DNA from: Tubulanus polymorphus
Taxonomy: Eukaryota; Animalia; Nemertea
Direction: 5' to 3'
Assembly (NCBI RefSeq): GCF_964204645.1
Contig: NC_134031.1
Location: 6,510,001 to 6,574,000 of the forward strand
Length of the DNA stretch: 64,000 nt
In this document: in pieces, positions 12,281-38,949 of the stretch
Layout: the number at the start of each line of letters is the position of its first letter
Position numbering within the stretch: the stretch's first letter is position 1
The notes under the pieces: model-generated
What the model was told of the DNA's origin: nothing
The model's input: only the letters and a program-made list of their open reading frames with translations
Database searches by the model: none
Translations under genes and position numbers: made by a program

Positions 12281-13234
12281 ATGAATTCAACTCCGACTCA
12301 GATTGGTCGAACTTATCTAAGTAACATCATTCTTACGTCTGTTGTGAATAGGTCTGGAATCTACCGTACTGTGTCACTAGTCATTCTGCCTACCGTGTTC
12401 TTGTTTGGAGCGTTTGGAAATTCAGCTACTTTCCTGATAATGATAAGTCGCAGATTCCGAAGTTTATCTTACGCTAACTATCTCATCGTTTTGTCTCTCA
12501 GTGATACTATGTACTGTATAAATTATACAATGATGCCTGTTTTAAAGTTTGTTCTTTTGCATCTAAACACTGGTCCTATATTCATCATGATTTCAGTGAC
12601 CAGTTGTCAAATCTATGAATTTTTGATGGCACTTGCTGTTAGCAATAGTTCGTGGTTAATTGTAGCAATATCTCTAGAACGTGCGGCAGTTGTGCTCTTC
12701 CCGTTCACATCTCGTTTGATATGTACACCGAGATTCGCTAGATTTGTAATTCTGATGATTACTGCAGTGAATGTACTGGTTCAATATCTTCTTCCTACTT
12801 TGTCCATACATTTTCTCGACAAGTTTTTTGGATGTTACCATGAATTATTCGACCAAACAAATTATTTCATCCTAATTGTCATTTACATATACCTTTTGCC
12901 ATTGATTTTGATTCTAACATCAAATTCTGTTATAATAGTTCAGTTATTCAGAGATACAAAAATTGTTTTGTCTGATAAAAAAGCTACAAAATCAAAACGT
13001 ACAACAAAAATGCTTGTAACAGTTTCACTCGCATTTGCATTGTTTACACTTCCGACCACTATGACTACATTTTTACCAATCTCATCGGAACGAAGAGATT
13101 TTCTATATGATATATTTGCACAGTTTCAAATGTGCAACTTTGTAGTAAATTTCTACATATATCTTTTATTGGGACGAGAAATTCGTGAATATTTCTGTAT
13201 GAAAATCCGCTGTAGAAAAGTAGTCAAAGGATAA
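12281..13234 (+). CDS. Single-exon class A (rhodopsin-like) orphan GPCR, FMRFamide/peptide-receptor-like, 317 aa
   Basis: Seven hydrophobic segments; GN in TM1, LSLSD in TM2, Cys at the top of TM3, ISLERA (DRY variant), FxxFTLP in TM6, NFYIY in TM7. Confidence 0.92.
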   Translation: MNSTPTQIGRTYLSNIILTSVVNRSGIYRTVSLVILPTVFLFGAFGNSATFLIMISRRFRSLSYANYLIVLSLSDTMYCINYTMMPVLKFVLLHLNTGPIFIMISVTSCQIYEFLMALAVSNSSWLIVAISLERAAVVLFPFTSRLICTPRFARFVILMITAVNVLVQYLLPTLSIHFLDKFFGCYHELFDQTNYFILIVIYIYLLPLILILTSNSVIIVQLFRDTKIVLSDKKATKSKRTTKMLVTVSLAFALFTLPTTMTTFLPISSERRDFLYDIFAQFQMCNFVVNFYIYLLLGREIREYFCMKIRCRKVVKG

Positions 13235-19214: not shown

Positions 19215-20285
19215 ATGAGCGTAAATGTGACGACACCACAGTCCCCCTCTAGAACGTCCATGTGTTCCATAAAGCTGGAAGTTCAATACGCTTTATTTCC
19301 ACTGCATGTCTTCATAGGAATTCCTGTATCAGTGACTGGAATCGTACTAAATGTTTTATCAGTCATCGTTTTAAACCAAATGTCAACAAAAAGTTTTAGT
19401 TCAGCGTTGTTTCTGCTCAAGTATCTCAGCTACGCCGAGTGTGTATTTTTGGTCACCGATCTGAACTACAGGGGTTTAAGATATCTTGTTTCGATGATTC
19501 AACTCGGGGTTGATGTATTCAGGATGACGGCTGCGATGCAACCTTTCATGCTAATCGGTTCGATCACCGCATATGACATAGCACTACAAAATCGTAATTG
19601 GACTATAGTTCTATTGAGTTTAGACAGACTCGTTCACGTTGCGTTCCCTTTTAAAGCTATTAAATGGTTCACACGTATACGAAGTCTTGTCGTAGTAATA
19701 GCACTGACGTTGCTTTCAATCTATAGTCAAATGTATAAATACTTCTATCTCAGACTTAAATGGGTCAATCGAACCTGTCCGCACAGGAAACCCGGGTATA
19801 GAGTAGTTTTTGGAAGTGTTAATGTAACTGTTGGCCGATTTTATGGTCCTGCAATAGGTTCGTTGGCGCCGTTAACGTTTCTCGCGGCGTTCGCGGTTAC
19901 AACGCTGATCTTAACAAAACAGATACGCAGACGTCAAAAGGAAGTAGCTGTTAGTACTAGCGACAAAAACTCGACGCAAGCGATGAAGATGACGTTATGT
20001 ATCATAGGTCTACATGCATTGTTTGAACTGCCTGGTGGTATTAACCACATTATAATCGGTTTGAAACGTCATAGAATAATAACATATCCATATAGAGGAA
20101 TCGAAGGAACGACCGATTCCGTGGTAGGTTTACTCAATAGAATCGATTCCATTAGTAATTTCGTTATTTTTGTTCTAGCTAGTCCTTCCTTTCGAAAATT
20201 GTTGAAAAATACTCTGCTCAAATGTCGATCAAAATACACACAAATATGGACTACTCAATGTACACAGCGTGCGAAACAAAGATGA
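19215..20285 (+). CDS. Single-exon class A orphan GPCR (peptide-receptor-derived, chemoreceptor-like), 356 aa
   Basis: 7 TM; GIVLN, LSYAE, RNWTIVLLSLDRL..VAFPF, FELPGG, DSISNFVIF..ASPSFR. Confidence 0.92.
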   Translation: MSVNVTTPQSPSRTSMCSIKLEVQYALFPLHVFIGIPVSVTGIVLNVLSVIVLNQMSTKSFSSALFLLKYLSYAECVFLVTDLNYRGLRYLVSMIQLGVDVFRMTAAMQPFMLIGSITAYDIALQNRNWTIVLLSLDRLVHVAFPFKAIKWFTRIRSLVVVIALTLLSIYSQMYKYFYLRLKWVNRTCPHRKPGYRVVFGSVNVTVGRFYGPAIGSLAPLTFLAAFAVTTLILTKQIRRRQKEVAVSTSDKNSTQAMKMTLCIIGLHALFELPGGINHIIIGLKRHRIITYPYRGIEGTTDSVVGLLNRIDSISNFVIFVLASPSFRKLLKNTLLKCRSKYTQIWTTQCTQRAKQR

Positions 20286-24099: not shown

Positions 24100-27000
24100 T
24101 TAAGTTACAATTACCTTGCCATGAAATTTGAAAAAGAGAATTTCAGCTAACAAGACCAATAATGCAACAGCCATACCGATAGCCAGCATAATGAAAATAC
24201 CCCTTGTATCGGGCAATTTACTTTCATCAATCTCCTCATCTGCCTCCTTGACGTCCTCTTTTTTCCACCATTTGTTGTACAGCTCTTCGAGTTTACCGCT
24301 CGCTTTCATTTTTGTTATAGCTGAATTCAGCTTCGATTTCATCGGCGAGTTTTTTGGCAATGCCAAGCCGTACTGTCCTTTATTCAAGAGCCCTCCGATT
24401 AGTACCAGGTCCTTGTCCTTCCTCGATATGCGCTCTAGATAAGGGCTCATCCCTATGAATGCGAATCCGCCTTGCTTCACCAGTTCGTGTCCTTCTTCCG
24501 TCGAATTGAGAAATTTTAATTTCGGCAGCATTTTTTGATGGACAGGATTGTTAGAATTCTTCAAGAAATTGTAGGTTCGGCTGCTTTCGATCACGCCGTA
24601 TTCCAGATTAGATTTGAACAAGGCGGAATCGGAGCTGACTTTCGCCGACGACGATTGCGTTGACAGGAACGGTTTAACTAGTATCAGGATAAGGATGTAT
24701 GAGATAAAAGTGATAAGACAGAATGCCCACCACCACACTGACAAAACCCGAGATGCGAGGCTGATCGGTCGCCATCTACTCCCACCTGAAAAAAATGAGA
24801 AACCGTACGCAATCGGTTCGATACATGTTTGATTTGGATTTCAACAGTTTTGATTTTTAAATTTGTAAAGACGGATTTAGGGGGGGGGGGGGTCTCGGGG
24901 TCCAGACCCCTGCCTTCCGAATAGAAGTTGCCTTTTTTATGAAGACAGAGATCGTTAAATTGTTTAACATTGTATACTCTTCCTCTCGGAAATCAAATCT
25001 ACTTTCAGAAATATCTAACACCGAGGGTGGGACTCAGTGGCCTTCCTTTGACATGGCTGCTATATCTGAGAAATGATTTATTTTCTTCCGGCCTTCCCAT
25101 TTTCCTAGATCTGCCCCTGCAGTGCTCATCCTATTCTAGGGGAACACAAGTCAGTAGTGTTTTGTATGTAAAAAGATAACAGTAAAACTAAGCCGGAATG
25201 AAGTGGTTCGCGAGTTGGAAGAAGTCACATTATTGTAACTCCATTCATATCATACAAACTGTTTTTCGTAATATTTGCTTATTCTCCACTAACCTTGCAT
25301 CGCAAACCCAGTTACAGTGTACCATAACGTCTGATAAATGTTGAAGCCTTGACCTTGCCTGGTTACGGGGGTCACCTCTCGACGTAGGGTTCTTTTGTGC
25401 CAGCCATACGGATCAAACCGATTAAATATCGCCAAGAGAATACTAGTCTACAAAATACGGAATCGGCTTAGTCAAATTCGAACTCGCAGCTCTGGAACTG
25501 GGTTCTGAATAAGGGAACATCTCAAAATTGAATAAGAATAACTCGCGGAAGTGGGTGGGGGGGGGGGGGGGGGTTGAAGGCCTCCCATTGATTGATCACG
25601 ACTGCCGAACTATCGATCATTGCTATAGGATCCGAATCAGCTTTAAACTCTCAAGCTCTAAACTCTCGCACACTTTAGATATTAGGCATTTGACCGGAGC
25701 TCGAAAGAATTTCAATTTAGATATAATACTGTTCGCAGTAGATCTACTTTTCTCTTTTTAGATGATGTTGGTTTTCAGATTAATCTTATTTTATTCTTTA
25801 TGAAGTCTATTAGAGTTTCCAATCGGTGTTGTTTATATAATTTTTCCAGTTTATTTCAAATTGAATGTGTAATCAAAATAAACGCGTGAGAACTTATCTT
25901 TGTCACTGGTCTTTCATTAGAAAACCAATAGTTATAACTTAGGCATGTGTCAAACTAAATGGCGGGATGGGGGTAACAAGAATTAAACAGTTATTCTTAT
26001 CGACACAACTATTAAAATTTTGAGCTGCTCCTTAAATCGCGCCCATAACAGGAATGTGTGCTATGTTTTACTTACCAGGATCCAAGCGACGATTAGTAAT
26101 AACCAAGTGATCAGCGGGAACGGTTTGAAGAAATACGTCATGTTAGGCGTCTCTTTAACGACGAAAGCGTCGTTTTTGTTCATCATTATAGTCACTCCGT
26201 ACGACATAATGCTTTCGGTGAAATCGACCACTTTCAGGCGATCAGGAGATATCGTCATAGCAGCTGCTGCAATATCCGCTTTCTGAAAAATTTTCATAGT
26301 TCTAATTCCTGATTTTTTGTTTTAAAGTCATTATTATTATATAAGTTTATTTCTTTACAAAAATACAATACAAAAATACAGTCATAACTATTACATAAAA
26401 AGTTAAAGAATGTACTTCTACATTGTACAGCGTAGTAAAGAAAACGAACTCGTTTGGATTCAGTTAACCTACCTTGGCAAGTATTTCTTCAATCATTCCA
26501 TTCCATTGTTCTTTGCCACCGACCATCGATTTGGTGCCGTATTTCCCGTCGGGAACCAAATAGATGTTATACTTCAAATCGCTGATTTCGTTTGCTAATT
26601 CGTCCAATATGTCTTTCATGAAGCCTTCGTATTTGTCATTTCCCGACAGAGATTTGTCGTCTCGTGGGATCAAATACAATTTATCCTGAAAGCGAATAGC
26701 CATACGTAAGAGATGAAATTCATGACGGTAATATCAAGTTGTAAAAAATATTGCCTTCATTACTATGATTTTACCAAGGGCCAGTTGCGCATTAAATATA
26801 TTTCGTGAGCAATCTTCGTGCTTAACCAACCTTCGATATGTACTTACTACAATCGTTACGACTCTTGTGTTGGGTGCAGTTTGTCCGTCTAAAAAAGATG
26901 CACATATTAATTGTATTTAGAATAAGTAAGTTTGGAGGTCATACACGGGTTGTACTGATTTGAAATGATTAGCTTTAAGCGAGGCTTATCTGGTTTCAAT

Positions 27001-29068: not shown

Positions 29069-30070
29069 ATGGCTGAAGGAGGCCGTAACACGGGGAACAC
29101 TACTAGTGTAATATGCAAGTTTAAGCTCGAAACATACGAGGAATGGCTGTTTAATGTTTATCTTGCTCTCCCAATCTCAATCGTTGGAATTGTTCTTAAT
29201 TCACTAACGATTTACATTTTGTCATCCTACAATTCAAACGTTCCCACATTCACAATTTTACGGATTCTAGCCTTCGTGGAAAATAACTACCTGATCATTT
29301 CCGTCATAGACCGACCGATTCGATATTTGTACGAGTGGTCGCGATTGGGCGCGGGAATATTTATGAGAAGAGACCGCGAGATCGGATCGTATGTGAGATA
29401 CTTCATGGTAAATCCTACCGTAAAAATGACGAGAAACTGGATAACAGCAATGATAAGTGTCGAACGGGCTGTAGCCATTGTTTTCCCATTTAAATCTAGA
29501 GTTTACATGACGACCCGAGTTTATAAAATTATTTGTACTTTGGTTATCATTGTCTGCGCATTAACGCAATGTACTTGGCGTCTTTACTTCAAGAAACTAA
29601 CGTATAAAACAGTGTTTTGTCCATTCGAGGTTGAAATTGCGTGGGTTCCTGTTATGCGACGTCTTCCGAACGTTAGATATAACTTTCACAATTTAATGCA
29701 TATAGGACTGATCACCTTCTCACCTTTTTCCATAATGGTAATTGCGAATGTTATCATTGTTAGATCACTAATAATAGCAACAGGAAAGAGGAATACAATT
29801 TCAACTAGAGGTTCGTCGTCAGCTGCCATACAACATCAAGCATCAATTTTAGCATTAATGGCGGTCATGTCATATCTAATATTCGAATTCCCTGCGGGAT
29901 TTGTAAAGGGTCTAAAATGGTTGACGCCAAAAAATAAAAGAACCCGACTTGCCGCGTTTGGTCGTCTGTTTACTTCTTCGAATTCGTGTATCAATTTCAT
30001 TTTGTATTGCGTTTCAAGTAAGAAAATGAGGCGACAAGTTCGGGTGAAATTGAGATGCAAAATACTTTAA
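29069..30070 (+). CDS. Single-exon class A orphan GPCR, likely paralog of 19215-20285, 333 aa
   Basis: 7 TM; GIVLN, LAFVE, RNWITAMISVERA.AIVFPF, FEFPAG, NSCINFILYC. Confidence 0.92.
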   Translation: MAEGGRNTGNTTSVICKFKLETYEEWLFNVYLALPISIVGIVLNSLTIYILSSYNSNVPTFTILRILAFVENNYLIISVIDRPIRYLYEWSRLGAGIFMRRDREIGSYVRYFMVNPTVKMTRNWITAMISVERAVAIVFPFKSRVYMTTRVYKIICTLVIIVCALTQCTWRLYFKKLTYKTVFCPFEVEIAWVPVMRRLPNVRYNFHNLMHIGLITFSPFSIMVIANVIIVRSLIIATGKRNTISTRGSSSAAIQHQASILALMAVMSYLIFEFPAGFVKGLKWLTPKNKRTRLAAFGRLFTSSNSCINFILYCVSSKKMRRQVRVKLRCKIL

Positions 30071-32013: not shown

Positions 32014-35000
32014 TTATGTGTACGTGAACGTTTTCATGACTCCTCCGGACTCGCAAACAACTAGATTGCCTTCGTTGTCGATGGTGATCGCTCTGGGGTG
32101 ACGTATTCCATCTTTAGGCTTCAGCAGGACCCGTATGAATTCGCCCTCGGTGCTCAATTCGTGTATTCTCGAATTGCTCCAATCGGCTATCAGTATATGC
32201 CCGGTGTGGTCGATCGTTATGCCGCAGGGAAACTCCAACTTCATCGCTTGCGATTTCTGCACGTAAACGCGTCTCTTCTCGAAGTTTTTCGTCAGGAAAT
32301 AGACCTCGTTCTGTACGATATCGGACACGACGATCTCCCCGCTGCGCATGACGGCGATGAAGTGCGGCCAGCAGTTCTCCAGCTGGTATCGAGCCACTAC
32401 CTTGAACGAACTGGCTTTAATACACGGTATGAACACCTTATCGTCGCCGCAAACGACCATAATCTCGTCTCCATAAACGACCAAGCATTTCGGCGTATCT
32501 AACTCAAGTTTACGAATCATCTCACCGTTCACCGAAAATTCTATTATGCAATTTTTCTTGCTATCGGCGACGAGTATGTTACCATTCGGTAGAACAGCCA
32601 CGTCGCACGGACCTTCGAGTCGATTTTCGAAATCGCCGTTGAATTCGTCGACCAACCAGAATTCCGCCTCTTTGTTATCGATCGGAACTCGCTTTTCGAT
32701 GATTTTGATGTTCTTATTTCTGAAATCGGGTACGACGATACGGTTATCGGGCAGTACGGCGCATCCGAGTAGACTGGGTGTTTGGCGGTCGTTTCGGGAT
32801 TTCGTCGATATCGTGGCGACGATACTCGGCCTATCCGAATCCGCAACCTTCAATTCCCCGAGCACGTTATACGTTTGATCGGTCCACGAATCGTCGAGTT
32901 TTCTCTCGCGGAACACGTACCTCATACACCGCGTTCCGTCGTCGTCTCTTGGCGTACGAAACGGTTTAGCGTGTCCGAAACCTTTCAATTCGTTGTTACG
33001 AATGAACGTGTACAGATCGATCGTCCTAGCCGGCGTGCTTCCTTTTTCCAATAATTTCTTGTGCAGCTCTAACATATGTCGCAGCTTATTTTCTTCCCAT
33101 TTCGTCGAGTGGGCGATGATGCCGCCCTTGGTGGCGAAATCTCTTTCCAAAGCGTTGATCTTGTCCATCAGAGCCAGGCGCGATCTTTCGATGATAGAAA
33201 TCAGCGTCGTCGCCCGTAAGTTAACGCATCGCCGTAGATTGTCAACGTGTAACATCTTCTTACCTCGGACGACGTCGTTCGAAGCTTCGATATCTTTATC
33301 TTTAGCCAGCGCCATTTTCGCCTGGGAAAGCGTGTCGTCGATGTATTGATTCATTTCCCTCATACCTCCGTAGACGTCCATCATATCGTGGTCTTTGTGA
33401 TAGCCGACACACAGGTCGCAAATAGGCACCTTGCAACCGTCGTCGTTGCAAAAGTACTTGACGTTTTCGTCTGCGTGGTACGAACAGGACGGCATCTTGT
33501 ACTTTTCGGACTCGGATATCGGGTAGATTCGATGATTGACAGCGTCTCGGCCTCGGGGTACGTGGGTTTCGACGCAGTTTTGGCAAATGTTGATCTTACA
33601 GTCGCTACACCAATACTCGGCATCGCGATGACAAAGCTGACTTCCAAAGTGACTTCCTCCTTGATTTACGGGACCTTGCTTGACTTGACAGAGCGGCGCG
33701 TCAGATTCTAAATGTTTCTGTCAATATAGGAAGGAATAGTACATTAGTTAGCCTGCTTATCGATTTTTCGTACAAAGAATCGACAAAACTAACTTGGAAG
33801 TTTGTTGACGCCTTGAAAAATAACGCATATATTGCTTGATATTGTCGGTTATGAATAGCACAATACAAATCGCATATTATCAAGGATCAATAAAGTTATT
33901 TTGGATTTGAATAATATCGTTAATTGAAATGACCGGCAACCAGTCCAGCTCCGATACATTGACGACGTGGTGCACATGCTCCCAAAGATATTTATCAAAA
34001 AGATAAAATAAGAGTTATGAAATATATTTGATTACGAAATAAACGCCAACATTCTTAATAAGCCTTTTTACAGTTTCCAGGTGCCATATTTTGGGGTACG
34101 CATTGGTGAATCTTTGTCCCTATTATTCCCCGTTTAATTTTCTTATTTCGTTCATATCTCTGAATGGGATTAAGATAGAAAAAAAGTAAAAAGATCAATA
34201 AACTCGGCTGATAATCAACTTTTGACGTGGGAAGTGCACGTGCAATAATTATCAAAAAGATAAAATAAGAGTAATGAAATATATTTGATTGCGAAATAAA
34301 CGCCAAAATTCTCAATTGTAATTGCTATTTTAAAAAGCCAATATTGATGACGACTCACTCAGATTCCCATTAAATAACGCGTACTAGGTATCAATGTGTA
34401 TAAACATTATCTTAACGCTTTTTACGGCGTCCAAAGGGACATACCTGCACCAGTGCATAGTCGAAAAATTCTGGTTCCGGTGAAGGTGGTTCCGGCTCAT
34501 TGATCTGTTCAGCCTCGGCACCGCTTTCGTAAGGGGAGTACTCATCCGCCGAAGTGTCGTCTAACTGATGTTGAGGTGGCCCTAGTAATCGCGTCTCTTG
34601 ACATATTTTGCACCTCGAAGCGATTATCGAGTTGACCGACCTTCTCTTACCTATACACGGGAATAATCGGTATTAATCGCGCATTAAATGAAGCAGTAAA
34701 CGAACTAATATACATATACTCTCCAACCCTCGGCAGGATTCAAACGTTACTGGCCTCGCGGTATATGAACCCCTGTACCCGAATATTCCTAGTGGAAAAA
34801 AATTCACGTTCAAATCTGAAATGGTGAAAGTGTCAAATCTTTCTTTGGACCAAAAAGAAAATATGCTAAAACACGCATCACAAATAGCTTTTAAAAAAAG
34901 AGAAAAAATTACCCAACAAATCATGAGCAAAATCTCATACTCATTCATCTGCATATTGCATTTTATGATTTCAAGTAAGACATAAAAAACTGCAATCTGG

Positions 35001-35366
35001 TAATTAACCGAAGCAACTTCAGTATAGGTGAAAGCATGGGTACCCCAGCGTGGCAACAGGTTTTTTCATGCAATATGGGATCTGATCTATCGATTGATGT
35101 ATGTTGCCATCCATTAACAAAAAATGTCGTAGTATCCCATTTTCAAACCTCCGCCAGGCCGACTATCACGAGAAAAGTACCCTAACAAAATGGCGGCTAG
35201 CGACTGTAAAATGGTTTATTGTATTACCTTTTCGGTATGTTTCTTCGTTCGGGGATTTCACTCCTCCCATCCGTGCGCACTGCGGGCATAGTATGTGCTC
35301 GTTGGCGCATTTTGCGTACGGATGATCGTTTAACATATCTTTTCCGCAACTCATGCATTTCTTCAT
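32014..35366 (-). CDS. TRIM-NHL family E3 ligase (RING - B-box - B-box - coiled coil - NHL repeats), 3 exons, ~682 aa
   Basis: Exons 35366-35228, 34650-34445 and 33717-32014. A C3HC4 RING (C-x2-C-x12-C-x3-H-x2-C-x2-C-x29-C-x2-C) spans exons 1-2. B-boxes are WCSDCKINICQNCVETH and CSYH...FC...CKVPICDLC..YHKDH. NHL blades are GPCDVAVLPNGNILVAD, FPCGITID.TGHILIADW.N.RI and HPRAITIDNEGNLVVCE. Confidence 0.9.
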
Positions 35367-37133
35367 CTTGATTTGTGGCTGAATATCGAATAAAAAAAAT
35401 GCTTTTCTTAACGAGTATCTGAATGATATTCTGTTTGATATGATATTGTTTATTGAGTCAAACTTTTATGTAACTTGTATGACAAAGAAAACTTACGTAT
35501 ACATTAGACACTGATATGGCGGTTACATAATAATTTGCATATTTCGTATAATAATCTGAATTAAATTATATTACTAATATTTCACTGATATTCTATGGAC
35601 CCTCAAGGAGCACCTTCCGATGTGAAAATGCTTTAGTTAGTTTTGTTATAGCACCCGAGTTCATAGAAAGTAAATTGATAAATTTGTGCATTGATGGATA
35701 CTCGGCGTAATGCTTTGGGATAAAGTTTCTCCTTCGGAGTCCATACGCAGGACAAGTTAGCATAAAGTGAATTTGGAAGTGTACAATTGTGTAATTTCGA
35801 ATTAAGTTGAATTATTTTTCTCTTTCGGGGTCCGGGAAAGGAAGTTTTTCGCTTTTCTGTCATCATTGCCGATGTATACATAGGGTGACACCACCGAAAT
35901 AAAGAGTTTGCATTTTTATTCAGTTCTCGATCGAATCTAGCATTTCAACTTTGTTTTGAATCATATCGTCCTGGTATGGGCAAATTAACTTTCAAAATGC
36001 ATGAACGAATTGACTATTAACTCAGGTCATCAAATCACGGAATAACCAACACGAAAGCAACTAAGATAGCAAACAGAAAATGACTTACCTTAGGCTTACA
36101 CGGATACTCACGTGAAATGCCCAAAACCTAAACAGCAGTCCCCAGTTCGTAGCTAATGACGATTTCAATTCATTCTTAGTCGTGAGAACCATCGTTATGG
36201 AACGTGGGAACATTGAAGCGCTCTCGTTGTCTTGCGGGTTATAAGAACTCGCTCGTTTTTGTCGAGTTGAAACAGGTTTTCGAAAGCATTGAGTTTTTGA
36301 CTGGGAGCCGCCTTACTCTTGTACTGGCCTCTCGTTATTTTGAATGGTTTATGGATTCGAATTCTGGTGGCGCTAGTGATTTCAATCGAGACTTTAGTGT
36401 TCCCAACATTGATCAACTGTGAGAAATTCACGGAGCGAAGGTTATCGGCACAGATTTACGTCATTCTAAGCGGCGATCAAACCCAATAACGCATCGCTGA
36501 TGTTTCTAAATCCTTGTACATCCCCGGTATTTACTTTTCGTTATGTGTGGGTAAGAAAGAAATCACGTGCGCGGCCTCTATCTATTTCATTCAGAATTCC
36601 GAGCCATTTGTGATAGCTGCGATACGCGAGTGGTGCTTTCTTGATAATTTACTATTACACGCAATGTCGCAATGAGATAACAACACTAGAGCACTTACCA
36701 AATTTGTAAAAAAAAACTGTAAAAAACAACGATCTCTTCTACAAATGTATATGTGTTATAGACATGCGATATCGATTTTCGTTATTCTGATTCGTGAATT
36801 TGCGACTGGAACTGCTTGGCGTATCAAAAAATGATCATCTCCCATTCCACAGCATGCACGTTGAAGATGCTTTGGACGATGAATTTTCGAATGATATAAA
36901 AAATCAAGATTTTGTCTATCTTTGCTGCTTCGGGATAGATTAAAAACAAATTGAAGTGGCAGTTCAGCGATGTGCTAAATGATTTTTTAGAAATATGGAT
37001 CTTCGTATTATAATGTAACGGAAGATTACACGACATAGCACTGTCAGAGCGTCCGAACCAGCCATCATAAATTGAATAACTGTGATTAAAATAGTCAGAA
37101 ATTAAGATTAAAATCTTATTTATTGTAGATATA

Positions 37134-37325
37134 TTATGGCCACCAGGGACATACAGGAGGACAGATTTTCAGTCCACCGTGGACAATGCGATGACCTTGG
37201 CGAGTACGCACTTTCCTCCTAACAAGATCAGTTTCTTCATCATGGACAGAATCATCGTCAGTCTCTTCAGCCCGAACTCCAATTAGCAACACGGCAACAA
37301 GAACCAAACACCAGAAAATCTTCAT
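37134..37325 (-). CDS. Secreted prepro-peptide A (63 aa): signal + acidic pro-piece + basic cleavage site + cationic CPPVC/WW peptide; antimicrobial/toxin-like
   Basis: MKIFWCLVLVAVLLIGVRA-EETDDDSVHDEETDLV-RR-KVRTRQGHRIVHGGLKICPPVCPWWP*. Acceptor TTCTCAAATAG lies 8 nt before the ATG; AATAAA at 37124-37119. Confidence 0.82.
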   Translation of the reverse strand: MKIFWCLVLVAVLLIGVRAEETDDDSVHDEETDLVRRKVRTRQGHRIVHGGLKICPPVCPWWP

Positions 37326-37708
37326 CGCGCCACCTATTTGAGAATATCGTAGAAATAAATCATACAATTCCAATAACGAATATAGGCGTATAGTCTTGCT
37401 CGTAGTTTTGGCTCTCGGACCGGGGCTTGTGCCGGGCCGCCTCGGCATGTGTTAACAATGAAGATATCACAACGGTGAAACCGATTTATTCAGATTAATT
37501 CAAACGGAGAAATTTTTACTATGAAATAGAGATAATCGAATTTAGTCGAATAGAAAACCCTCTTCAATCCGTGTCAGTTGTAGCAGAAAAAAAGGTTCCG
37601 CGTTGGAAGTTTACGCGTTATCGAAGCGTTGTGGTTCCAGTGAAAAAAAAAATTGAGATCAAAAATTGTGAATGTTCCATGTAGATTTATTTATCATGGG
37701 TTTAGCAG

Positions 37709-37876
37709 TTAGGAGGACAGTGGCTTGTAGAAGGTCGTGCATGGCCAGGAACGGTTGATCCACGGTGGTCGAGGCCATGACTTTGGCCAGCAGTAATCAG
37801 TTACTTCATCATCAGTCTCTTTAGCGCAAACTACAAACAACACGGCAACAAAAACTACACACCAGAAAAGCTTCAT
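37709..37876 (-). CDS. Secreted prepro-peptide B (55 aa), tandem duplicate of A with a frameshifted Trp/Pro-rich C-terminus (functional variant or pseudo-exon)
   Basis: MKLFWCVVFVAVLFVVCA-KETDDEVTD-YCWPKSWPRPPWINRSWPCTTFYKPLSS*. It falls below the ORF-track cutoff. Same acceptor context (TCCCAAATAG/GTGGTGCGATG); AATAAA at 37691-37686. Confidence 0.68.
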   Translation of the reverse strand: MKLFWCVVFVAVLFVVCAKETDDEVTDYCWPKSWPRPPWINRSWPCTTFYKPLSS

Positions 37877-38277
37877 CGCACCACCTATTTGGGAATATCG
37901 TAGAAAATATTGTATACAGCTCCCATAACGATTAGGCGTATAGTGTTGTTACTCGTAGTTTTGGCTCTCGGACCGGCGTGTATTAACAACGACGATATTA
38001 CAACGGCGAAACCGATTTTGATAAATTTTTAATGAATAGTTTTTCACTATGAACTCATGAAATCTTTTCTAACTATTAGTCGAATAAAAAAACCCTCTTA
38101 AATCCGTGACAGTGTGTAGAAGAGAAAAGCCCCGCACTGGAATTTTACGAAACTGTGATCACGTAGATCGCGTAATCGAAACGTTGTGGTTTCAGGTACA
38201 AACTCTTGGAGATTTTATCACGTTGATTCCAGTGTGCGACTTTCACTTGTGTAAACAACTACGAAAGATTATTTTAC

Positions 38278-38354
38278 CTGTTATGCTGTTTCTTTAAGTT
38301 TCACGTGTGAAGCTGTTGTATGTGGCGTCTTTCTAACAGACAGCCATATTTATA
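38278..38354 (-). promoter_or_regulatory. TATA box and short non-coding leader exon for the peptide cassette
   Basis: TATAAATA at 38354-38347; ATG-free segment ending in a CAG/GTAAAA donor at 38278/38277. Confidence 0.6.
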
Positions 38355-38949
38355 CAGTTACTTGATAATCATTACCAATTTGGTCATATATCAAACTTGC
38401 AATATTTTCTCTATGTAATCCCAGTTTTAATGGAAGTAAGAGCAATATCGTATGGGTATATTAAACATTTTATTGGAAGATAAAGACAATATATCCTTTG
38501 GAGTAAATAATTCGGATAAATTTGTAATTGAAGTAGTTAATCCCCCAGCAGAGTCCGCGTTATTTGATGCATGTTATTAAAACTGTAAATCAGTGGGACC
38601 TCGTTACATCGGACTTCAGTGCACTAGAAGATATGTTCTTAATAACCGATAGTTTGTCATATCCAGTGTGAAAATATCAAAAGTGTCCTTTTTGAGACGA
38701 AATAATTCTAAGCTGACAAATGCACGAATATAGCGAGGTCTACTGCAGGCCCCGGTCGAGGGTACTGCATTTCCGTTGGACACGAGCCTTAAAGTCGACC
38801 TCTTCGTGAAGTAGTTACTTTGCAACCGGGCTACAAACTCTGGACTAGAACTTAAGACTGTGAGTACAGTCCTTGAACTTCAGCCTGAAATCATTCTCGT
38901 TTGTAACTTTTTTGACGCAGTAAAAACCATTAGAATAATGTTTATAAAC

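Follow-up and report, generated by a model that had tools for sequence, protein, structure and literature searches.

A single leader and two tandemly duplicated prepropeptide exons in an orphan peptide family of the ribbon worm Tubulanus polymorphus

One promoter, one leader and a duplicated terminal exon

We analysed a stretch of 64,000 nucleotides from the nemertean Tubulanus polymorphus (NCBI RefSeq assembly GCF_964204645.1, contig NC_134031.1, positions 6,510,001 to 6,574,000), called the window here, in which a compact minus-strand locus carries two terminal exons, A and B, that each encode a small predicted secreted peptide. The locus belongs to a new orphan family of genes for small, putatively secreted, cationic, Cys/Pro/Trp-rich prepropeptides, so far found in this genome alone. 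At its upstream end lie a TATA box and a predicted non-coding leader exon, followed by an intron and the two terminal exons, B before A (Table 1; a slash marks a splice border).

A unit of about 555 bp, made up of the 3' part of the intron, the acceptor, a whole prepropeptide open reading frame (ORF) and an AATAAA, is present twice in tandem. A preliminary description of this DNA had put such a unit at about 550 bp, and the duplication is borne out by three comparisons: a repeat search finds six collinear blocks of direct repeats (spacing 531-555 bp, identity 82-96%), a pairwise alignment of the copies has a mean column identity of 77%, and BLAST aligns the two introns (70.5% over 295 columns, E 2e-32) and the 5' parts of the two exons (82.9% over 82 nt). 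These alignments refine the limits to 38202-37648 for copy B and 37647 to ~37095 for copy A, with a T-run at 37652-37643 as the junction; one duplication endpoint lies inside the intron and the other ~35 nt beyond the poly(A) signal. The homology begins at 38202, 75 nt past the donor, and the locus has a single copy of the TATA box, of the leader and of the intron's first 75 nt, which agrees with the earlier view that it stops short of the only TATA box and leader. Exactly one match to TATAWAW occurs on either strand of 37090-38420 (at 38354-38348), the family's promoter-and-leader profile matches once in the window (38411-38271), and neither of the two other leader types of the family, described below, occurs anywhere in it. 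Copy A, as first described, thus has an acceptor with no visible promoter or donor of its own. A window-wide scan for TATA boxes is uninformative because of (TA)n microsatellites.

Both copies use the same acceptor, ...aaatag/G, with exon starts at 37884 (B) and 37333 (A), and in both the ATG stands 8 nt into the terminal exon. The sequence thus shows the arrangement expected of an alternative-last-exon gene: a single promoter and donor-bearing first exon upstream of both terminal exons, and two terminal exons each equipped with acceptor, ORF and poly(A) signal. On this comparison, a tandem duplication at the DNA level is what put a second complete, predicted terminal exon behind a single leader. 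Retrocopying as the origin of A was ruled out, since the copy includes intron sequence and has no sense-strand poly(A) tail, and so was onward splicing of the B exon into A through an internal GAA/GTAACT, as the joined frame stops after three codons. Copy A also has an in-frame ATG at 37448 that lengthens its ORF to 104 aa through the intron-like segment (37134-37448, minus strand); an unspliced A transcript beginning upstream of 37448 would bury the signal peptide.

Table 1. Positions of the features at the locus, of related copies and of other genes in the window
Feature	Position	Strand	Remarks
Upstream promoter region	38355..38600	-	Conserved with paralogous promoters on contig C1; alignment of four promoters
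TATA box TATAAAT	38348..38354	-	Sole one at the locus; kept in all four type-1 promoters
Non-coding leader exon	38278..38325	-	Predicted from sequence; start put ~25-30 nt past TATA; ends cag/gtaaaa
Intron, 5' part, single-copy	38203..38277	-	Self-match only within the window
Copy B, 3' part of intron with branch/polypyrimidine region and acceptor	37885..38202	-	Conserved blocks 38013-37994, 37969-37952
Copy B, terminal exon	37648..37884	-	Coding sequence (CDS) 37876-37709, 55 aa; AATAAA 37691-37686, then T-rich tract
Copy A, 3' part of intron (314 nt)	37334..37647	-	No leader, TATA box or donor; conserved blocks 37482-37463, 37416-37399
Copy A, extra motifs	AATAAA 37490-37485; A-specific TATATT 37384-37379	-	Within duplicated intron part
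Copy A, terminal exon	37095..37333	-	CDS 37325-37134, 63 aa; AATAAA 37124-37119
TACGATATT motif	Window 38444-38470, 37343-37369; L015 ~8120, ~8570	- (window)	Repeat search
Leaderless copy	Window, copy A		After B; intact
Leaderless copy	L015:8554		Follows an intact gene; intron part ~115 bp; truncated and lacking its start codon
Leaderless copy	L018:155		~115 bp of intron; equivalent of L015:8554 in next tandem unit
Leaderless copy	L015:6976		Follows an intact gene; intron part ~115 bp; signal with a 7-nt deletion, more frame breaks
Leaderless copy	L019:558 (L019:332-558)		~215 nt past the poly(A) signal of another member; intron part ~200 bp, of the window type; A-type ORF, 73 codons in frame, one internal TAG
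Frame-comparison regions	Window 37876-37702; L019:2563-2772; L019:4505-4738; L015:8823-9053	-	
Intronless rhodopsin-type GPCR ORFs, three	12281-13234, 19215-20285, 29069-30070	+	
B-box/NHL TRIM-type gene	32014-33495 and 35166-35366	-	Just downstream of peptide locus
iGluR-like ligand-binding fragment	24100-24744	-	

The peptide family and its usual gene structure

A DNA search followed by a hidden Markov model search of the whole 268-Mb assembly confines the family to three loci with at least 17 coding-exon copies. Besides the window there are two clusters, both on contig C1: one at 21.277-21.280 Mb with 5 coding exons, the other at 30.928-30.940 Mb with at least 10. The exon start is nearly invariant among members (G-T-G-G-C-G-C-G/T, then ATGAAGG), and their precursors begin with a signal peptide followed by an acidic pro-region that mostly ends in KR. 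The cationic mature parts have a high content of Pro, Trp, Arg and Cys and are unalignable across the family, and several paralogs have a G-K/R-K/R C-terminus, an amidation-type end. In the window, the A precursor consists of a signal, an acidic pro-region, an RRK site and a cationic peptide that contains a CPPVC loop and ends in PWWP; that of B has a signal, a short acidic stretch, no KR site and a Trp/Pro-rich peptide with two Cys. The contrast between conserved signal and intron and divergent mature region, first noticed between A and B, holds for this pair and for the whole family, and the toxin- or antimicrobial-like pattern seen in it, a conserved signal and acidic pro-region before a hypervariable mature part, extends across all three loci. 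From this architecture, the peptides probably serve as defence molecules, toxins or signals.

Three types of leader can be told apart. Type 1, that of the window, is found at four loci with a conserved TATA box and the donor AACAG/GTAAAA, and both the AACAG/GTAA core of the donor and its spacing from the TATA box are kept in the paralogs; type 3 belongs to four C1 genes with a TATA box of their own, the donor AACAG/GTAAGG and an intron of 65-190 nt; and type 2 belongs to three further genes. The distance from TATA box to donor is ~70-80 nt in all three types, while introns vary from 65 to 470 nt and in sequence, and this constancy against changing introns supports a model in which the normal family gene would comprise a TATA promoter, a non-coding leader of ~50 nt, one intron, and one exon with prepropeptide and poly(A) signal. 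It follows from the comparison of the three types that intact genes normally possess their own promoter and leader. One C1 gene has several candidate donors in a row, because the 3' end of its leader, with the donor CAG/GTAAAAC, is reiterated by a tandem repeat at L015:7748-7959 (unit 27 bp, 8 copies, 81% matches), and the member at L019:6650-7500 (minus strand) has an insertion of ~89 bp after the fifth codon of its signal peptide and two stacked leader types, with the proximal donor changed from GT to TT. The ORF of this disrupted member (L019:6650-6726, minus strand) contains a CPWYKPC loop, which has the size and the Pro/Trp pattern of a contryphan loop.

Two blocks in the intron are far better conserved than the intron sequence around them. 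They have four and three occurrences in the assembly, always upstream of family exons, and are retained upstream of A, of B, of the intact gene L015:8826-9053 and of L019:558, a leaderless copy that is nearly intact; they may be a splicing element, an enhancer or an internal promoter. So few occurrences rule out a dispersed repeat, and an intron-hosted snoRNA as the cause of their conservation is unsupported, neither Rfam nor tRNA features being found in the window.

Leaderless copies usually decay, but copy A is intact

Four further copies without a leader exist in the family, all of them broken, which leaves A as the sole intact one (Table 1). In the dead leaderless copies, where no more than ~115 bp of intron is left, the first conserved intron block is missing. 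More generally, exons of the family that are clearly neutral show frameshifts, lost start codons and stops, and one copy, L016:6720, is dead despite having its own leader. A good donor-like site, AA/GTAAGC, lies at L019:780-800 (minus strand), within the 3' untranslated region (UTR) of the gene that immediately precedes the leaderless L019:558.

Several features of A point to constraint. Its RRK site, CPPxC motif and Trp-rich end are in the same frame as in the intact C1 genes L015:8826-9053 and L015:7220-7444, and the two deletions specific to its lineage (33 and ~15 nt) are both in frame. Substitutions were counted by hand from alignments of the first 25 codons, and are to be read as counts over short sequences: 6 synonymous and 4 non-synonymous between A and L019:7909-8097, and 2 synonymous and 9 non-synonymous, plus one codon deletion, between A and B. 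Judged by the other paralogs, 6-7 of these 9 non-synonymous changes fall on the side of B; in the signal peptide, A is the more conservative copy and B the faster-changing one. Taken together, A has probably been kept under selection.

Copy B is not simply broken either. Its mature part is read one base out of the A-type frame, and its deletion of the KR segment is also present in the dead copy L015:6976. However, the same B-type frame (C-W-P-K/R-S...P-R-P-P) is used over homologous nucleotides by two intact, promoter-bearing genes, L019:2566-2772 and L019:4508-4738, from which it follows that the family uses both frames. The intact paralogs accordingly fall into two kinds, one frame giving a His/Gly-rich CPPxC type of peptide and the other a Trp/Pro-rich Cys-loop type. 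In B itself the other frame is also open, to a CPPNC-stop at 37719-37702, and open frames are therefore cheap in the G+C-rich mature segment. The family thus seems to gain peptide diversity by switching frames. Relations among the copies are reticulate (a 3-nt deletion is common to A and B, the KR deletion to B and L015:6976) and would allow more than one order of events.

How copy A might be expressed

A leader shared by A and B as alternative last exons is the best single explanation of the locus, but it is unproven: we would give it somewhat less than an even chance, and ordinary alternatives remain likely. Under this explanation the leader donor (exon end 38278) could pair with either of two near-identical acceptors. 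Splicing to 37884 with cleavage past 37686 would yield the B message, whereas the A message would result if the acceptor and poly(A) site of B were passed over and the leader were joined to 37333, across an intron of 944 nt. At its birth, the duplication would have given two identical acceptors behind one donor, and alternative use of the terminal exons would thus have been the default starting state; branch, polypyrimidine and acceptor sequences of A and B are nearly identical to this day, so that both acceptors could compete for the donor. Continued expression of A is favoured because A stayed canonical without a promoter of its own while neutral copies in the family decayed. In its favour, too, another leaderless exon of the A type, L019:332-558, is still in frame over 73 codons but for a single stop. 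Several observations nevertheless weigh against a shared leader. A TATA box and leader of their own are normal for intact members, and the other leaderless copies (L015:8554, L015:6976, L018:155 and L019:558) are all broken. Transcription reaches the acceptor of B before that of A, and the AATAAA of B, backed by a T-rich tract, makes a strong poly(A) site, so B should often win, and a further AATAAA (37490-37485) stands between B and the acceptor of A. The segment upstream of A holds its own TATATT, and the argument from selection consists of hand counts over short sequences, which cannot date changes relative to the duplication.

The TATATT raises a different account, which we consider unlikely but by no means negligible, in which A would be an independent gene that starts within the duplicated intron segment from a cryptic or new core promoter, possibly using enhancers of the upstream promoter, and is left unspliced with a 5' UTR of ~30 nt. 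This motif lies ~50 nt before the acceptor and arose by a small insertion absent from B and the paralogs; yet it is not a canonical TATA box, whereas every recognisable family promoter has a strong one, and nothing TATA-like stands at the corresponding place in the other leaderless copy of the A type. The retention of both family-specific intron blocks upstream of A, when dead leaderless copies are without the first, would fit an internal promoter, but is equally explicable by splicing elements. An independent start would also suit the TACGATATT motif, found ~95 nt upstream of the TATA box and again ~15 nt ahead of acceptors of family members, although a start upstream of 37448 would place the additional in-frame ATG before the signal peptide. 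Somewhat less probable again is that A is a silent promoterless duplicate, intact by chance, and that only B is made. The decay of the four comparable copies, the expected dominance of the proximal acceptor and strong poly(A) site of B and the AATAAA that follows them are all in keeping with silence, as is the ease with which G+C-rich mature regions keep alternative frames open, which makes an open ORF a weak sign of selection. But the introns of A and B differ by ~25-30%, with many insertions and deletions that are not multiples of three, whereas A shows no net frameshift from signal to CPPxC, has lost none of ATG, acceptor, basic site and AATAAA, and is the copy with the more conservative signal; by a rough hand estimate, the chance that all of these features survive neutrally is a few per cent. 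Finally, the A acceptor, with no cis donor of its own and ~350 nt past the upstream poly(A) signal, is placed as it would be in an operon-like arrangement in which it takes a trans-spliced leader after read-through from B. Such spliced-leader trans-splicing is very improbable here, given that the window contains no Rfam RNA family, that a literature search gave no report of it for Nemertea and that every other intact member has a cis leader with donor.

If the shared leader is indeed spliced to both exons, the locus would be a clean natural case of a small tandem duplication creating alternative last exons, with one promoter delivering two peptide classes. Extended to the whole family, the proposal becomes more doubtful: that the family diversifies by nested prepropeptide terminal exons behind a shared leader, maintained by selection, together with frame-switched mature regions in intact paralogs, strikes us as a possibility with distinctly more against it than for it. 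The use of two frames over homologous DNA in intact paralogs is in itself a simple and testable route to peptide novelty.

Comparison with known peptide systems

No relatives of the family were found in a library of 5.8 billion proteins. Neither a word-index search, with A alone or with an alignment of 10 members, nor a full HMMER profile search of 1.84 billion representatives (0 matches at E<=0.001) returned any, exact-product look-ups for A, B and five paralogs gave no matching record, and no paper containing the signal motif came up in a literature search. Pfam matches were all below threshold: for conotoxins (PF02950), 13.1 bits against a gathering cut-off of 25.1 (E 0.19), over the signal and pro part only; for penaeidins (PF05927), 16 bits for B against 25; and for frog skin active peptide precursors (PF03032), no match at E<=10. 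By protein language model, frog skin peptide and conotoxin precursors are look-alikes, with scores that count as leads only and not as kinship; the frog precursors come nearest, at 0.83, which is below the level of more than a lead.

In gene structure, a close parallel is the calcitonin/CGRP gene, in which one promoter serves two terminal exons with their own poly(A) sites that encode different secreted peptides. The ribbon-worm locus shares this layout, its alternative use here being a prediction. In calcitonin/CGRP, however, the signal and the N-terminal pro-region lie in shared coding exons, whereas in the ribbon worm the common leader is non-coding and an entire prepropeptide cassette, derived from tandem duplication, sits in each terminal exon. 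The dermaseptin-type frog skin precursors of PF03032 resemble the family in their conserved signal and acidic propiece, basic cleavage site and hypervariable cationic peptide. Frog skin peptide genes carry the signal on exon 1, which is non-coding in the ribbon-worm family, and the likeness is one of analogy, not kinship. Conotoxin superfamilies (PF02950) and contryphans likewise combine a conserved prepro part with a hypervariable, Cys-bounded mature peptide and tandem multigene clusters, and one paralog has the CPWYKPC loop of contryphan size noted above, but conotoxins differ in exon structure. Pro/Trp-rich antimicrobial peptides (penaeidins, myticalins and the indolicidin type) have similarly cationic, Pro/Trp/Arg-rich mature peptides; no homology to them was detected, and for the ribbon-worm peptides such activity is a prediction. 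The family is a previously unlisted one. It combines a conserved prepro part with a hypervariable mature part, as is typical of defence peptides and toxins, and would be a candidate source of new bioactive ribbon-worm peptides.

Surroundings of the locus

The window is eukaryotic in character, with ~37% G+C. Downstream of the peptide locus, and on its strand, comes the TRIM-NHL gene, and no other gene encloses the locus; the remaining genes recognised are listed in Table 1. At 49441-50173, a (CCTCTC)n microsatellite of 122 copies accounts for a strong GC skew and for long ORFs on both strands.

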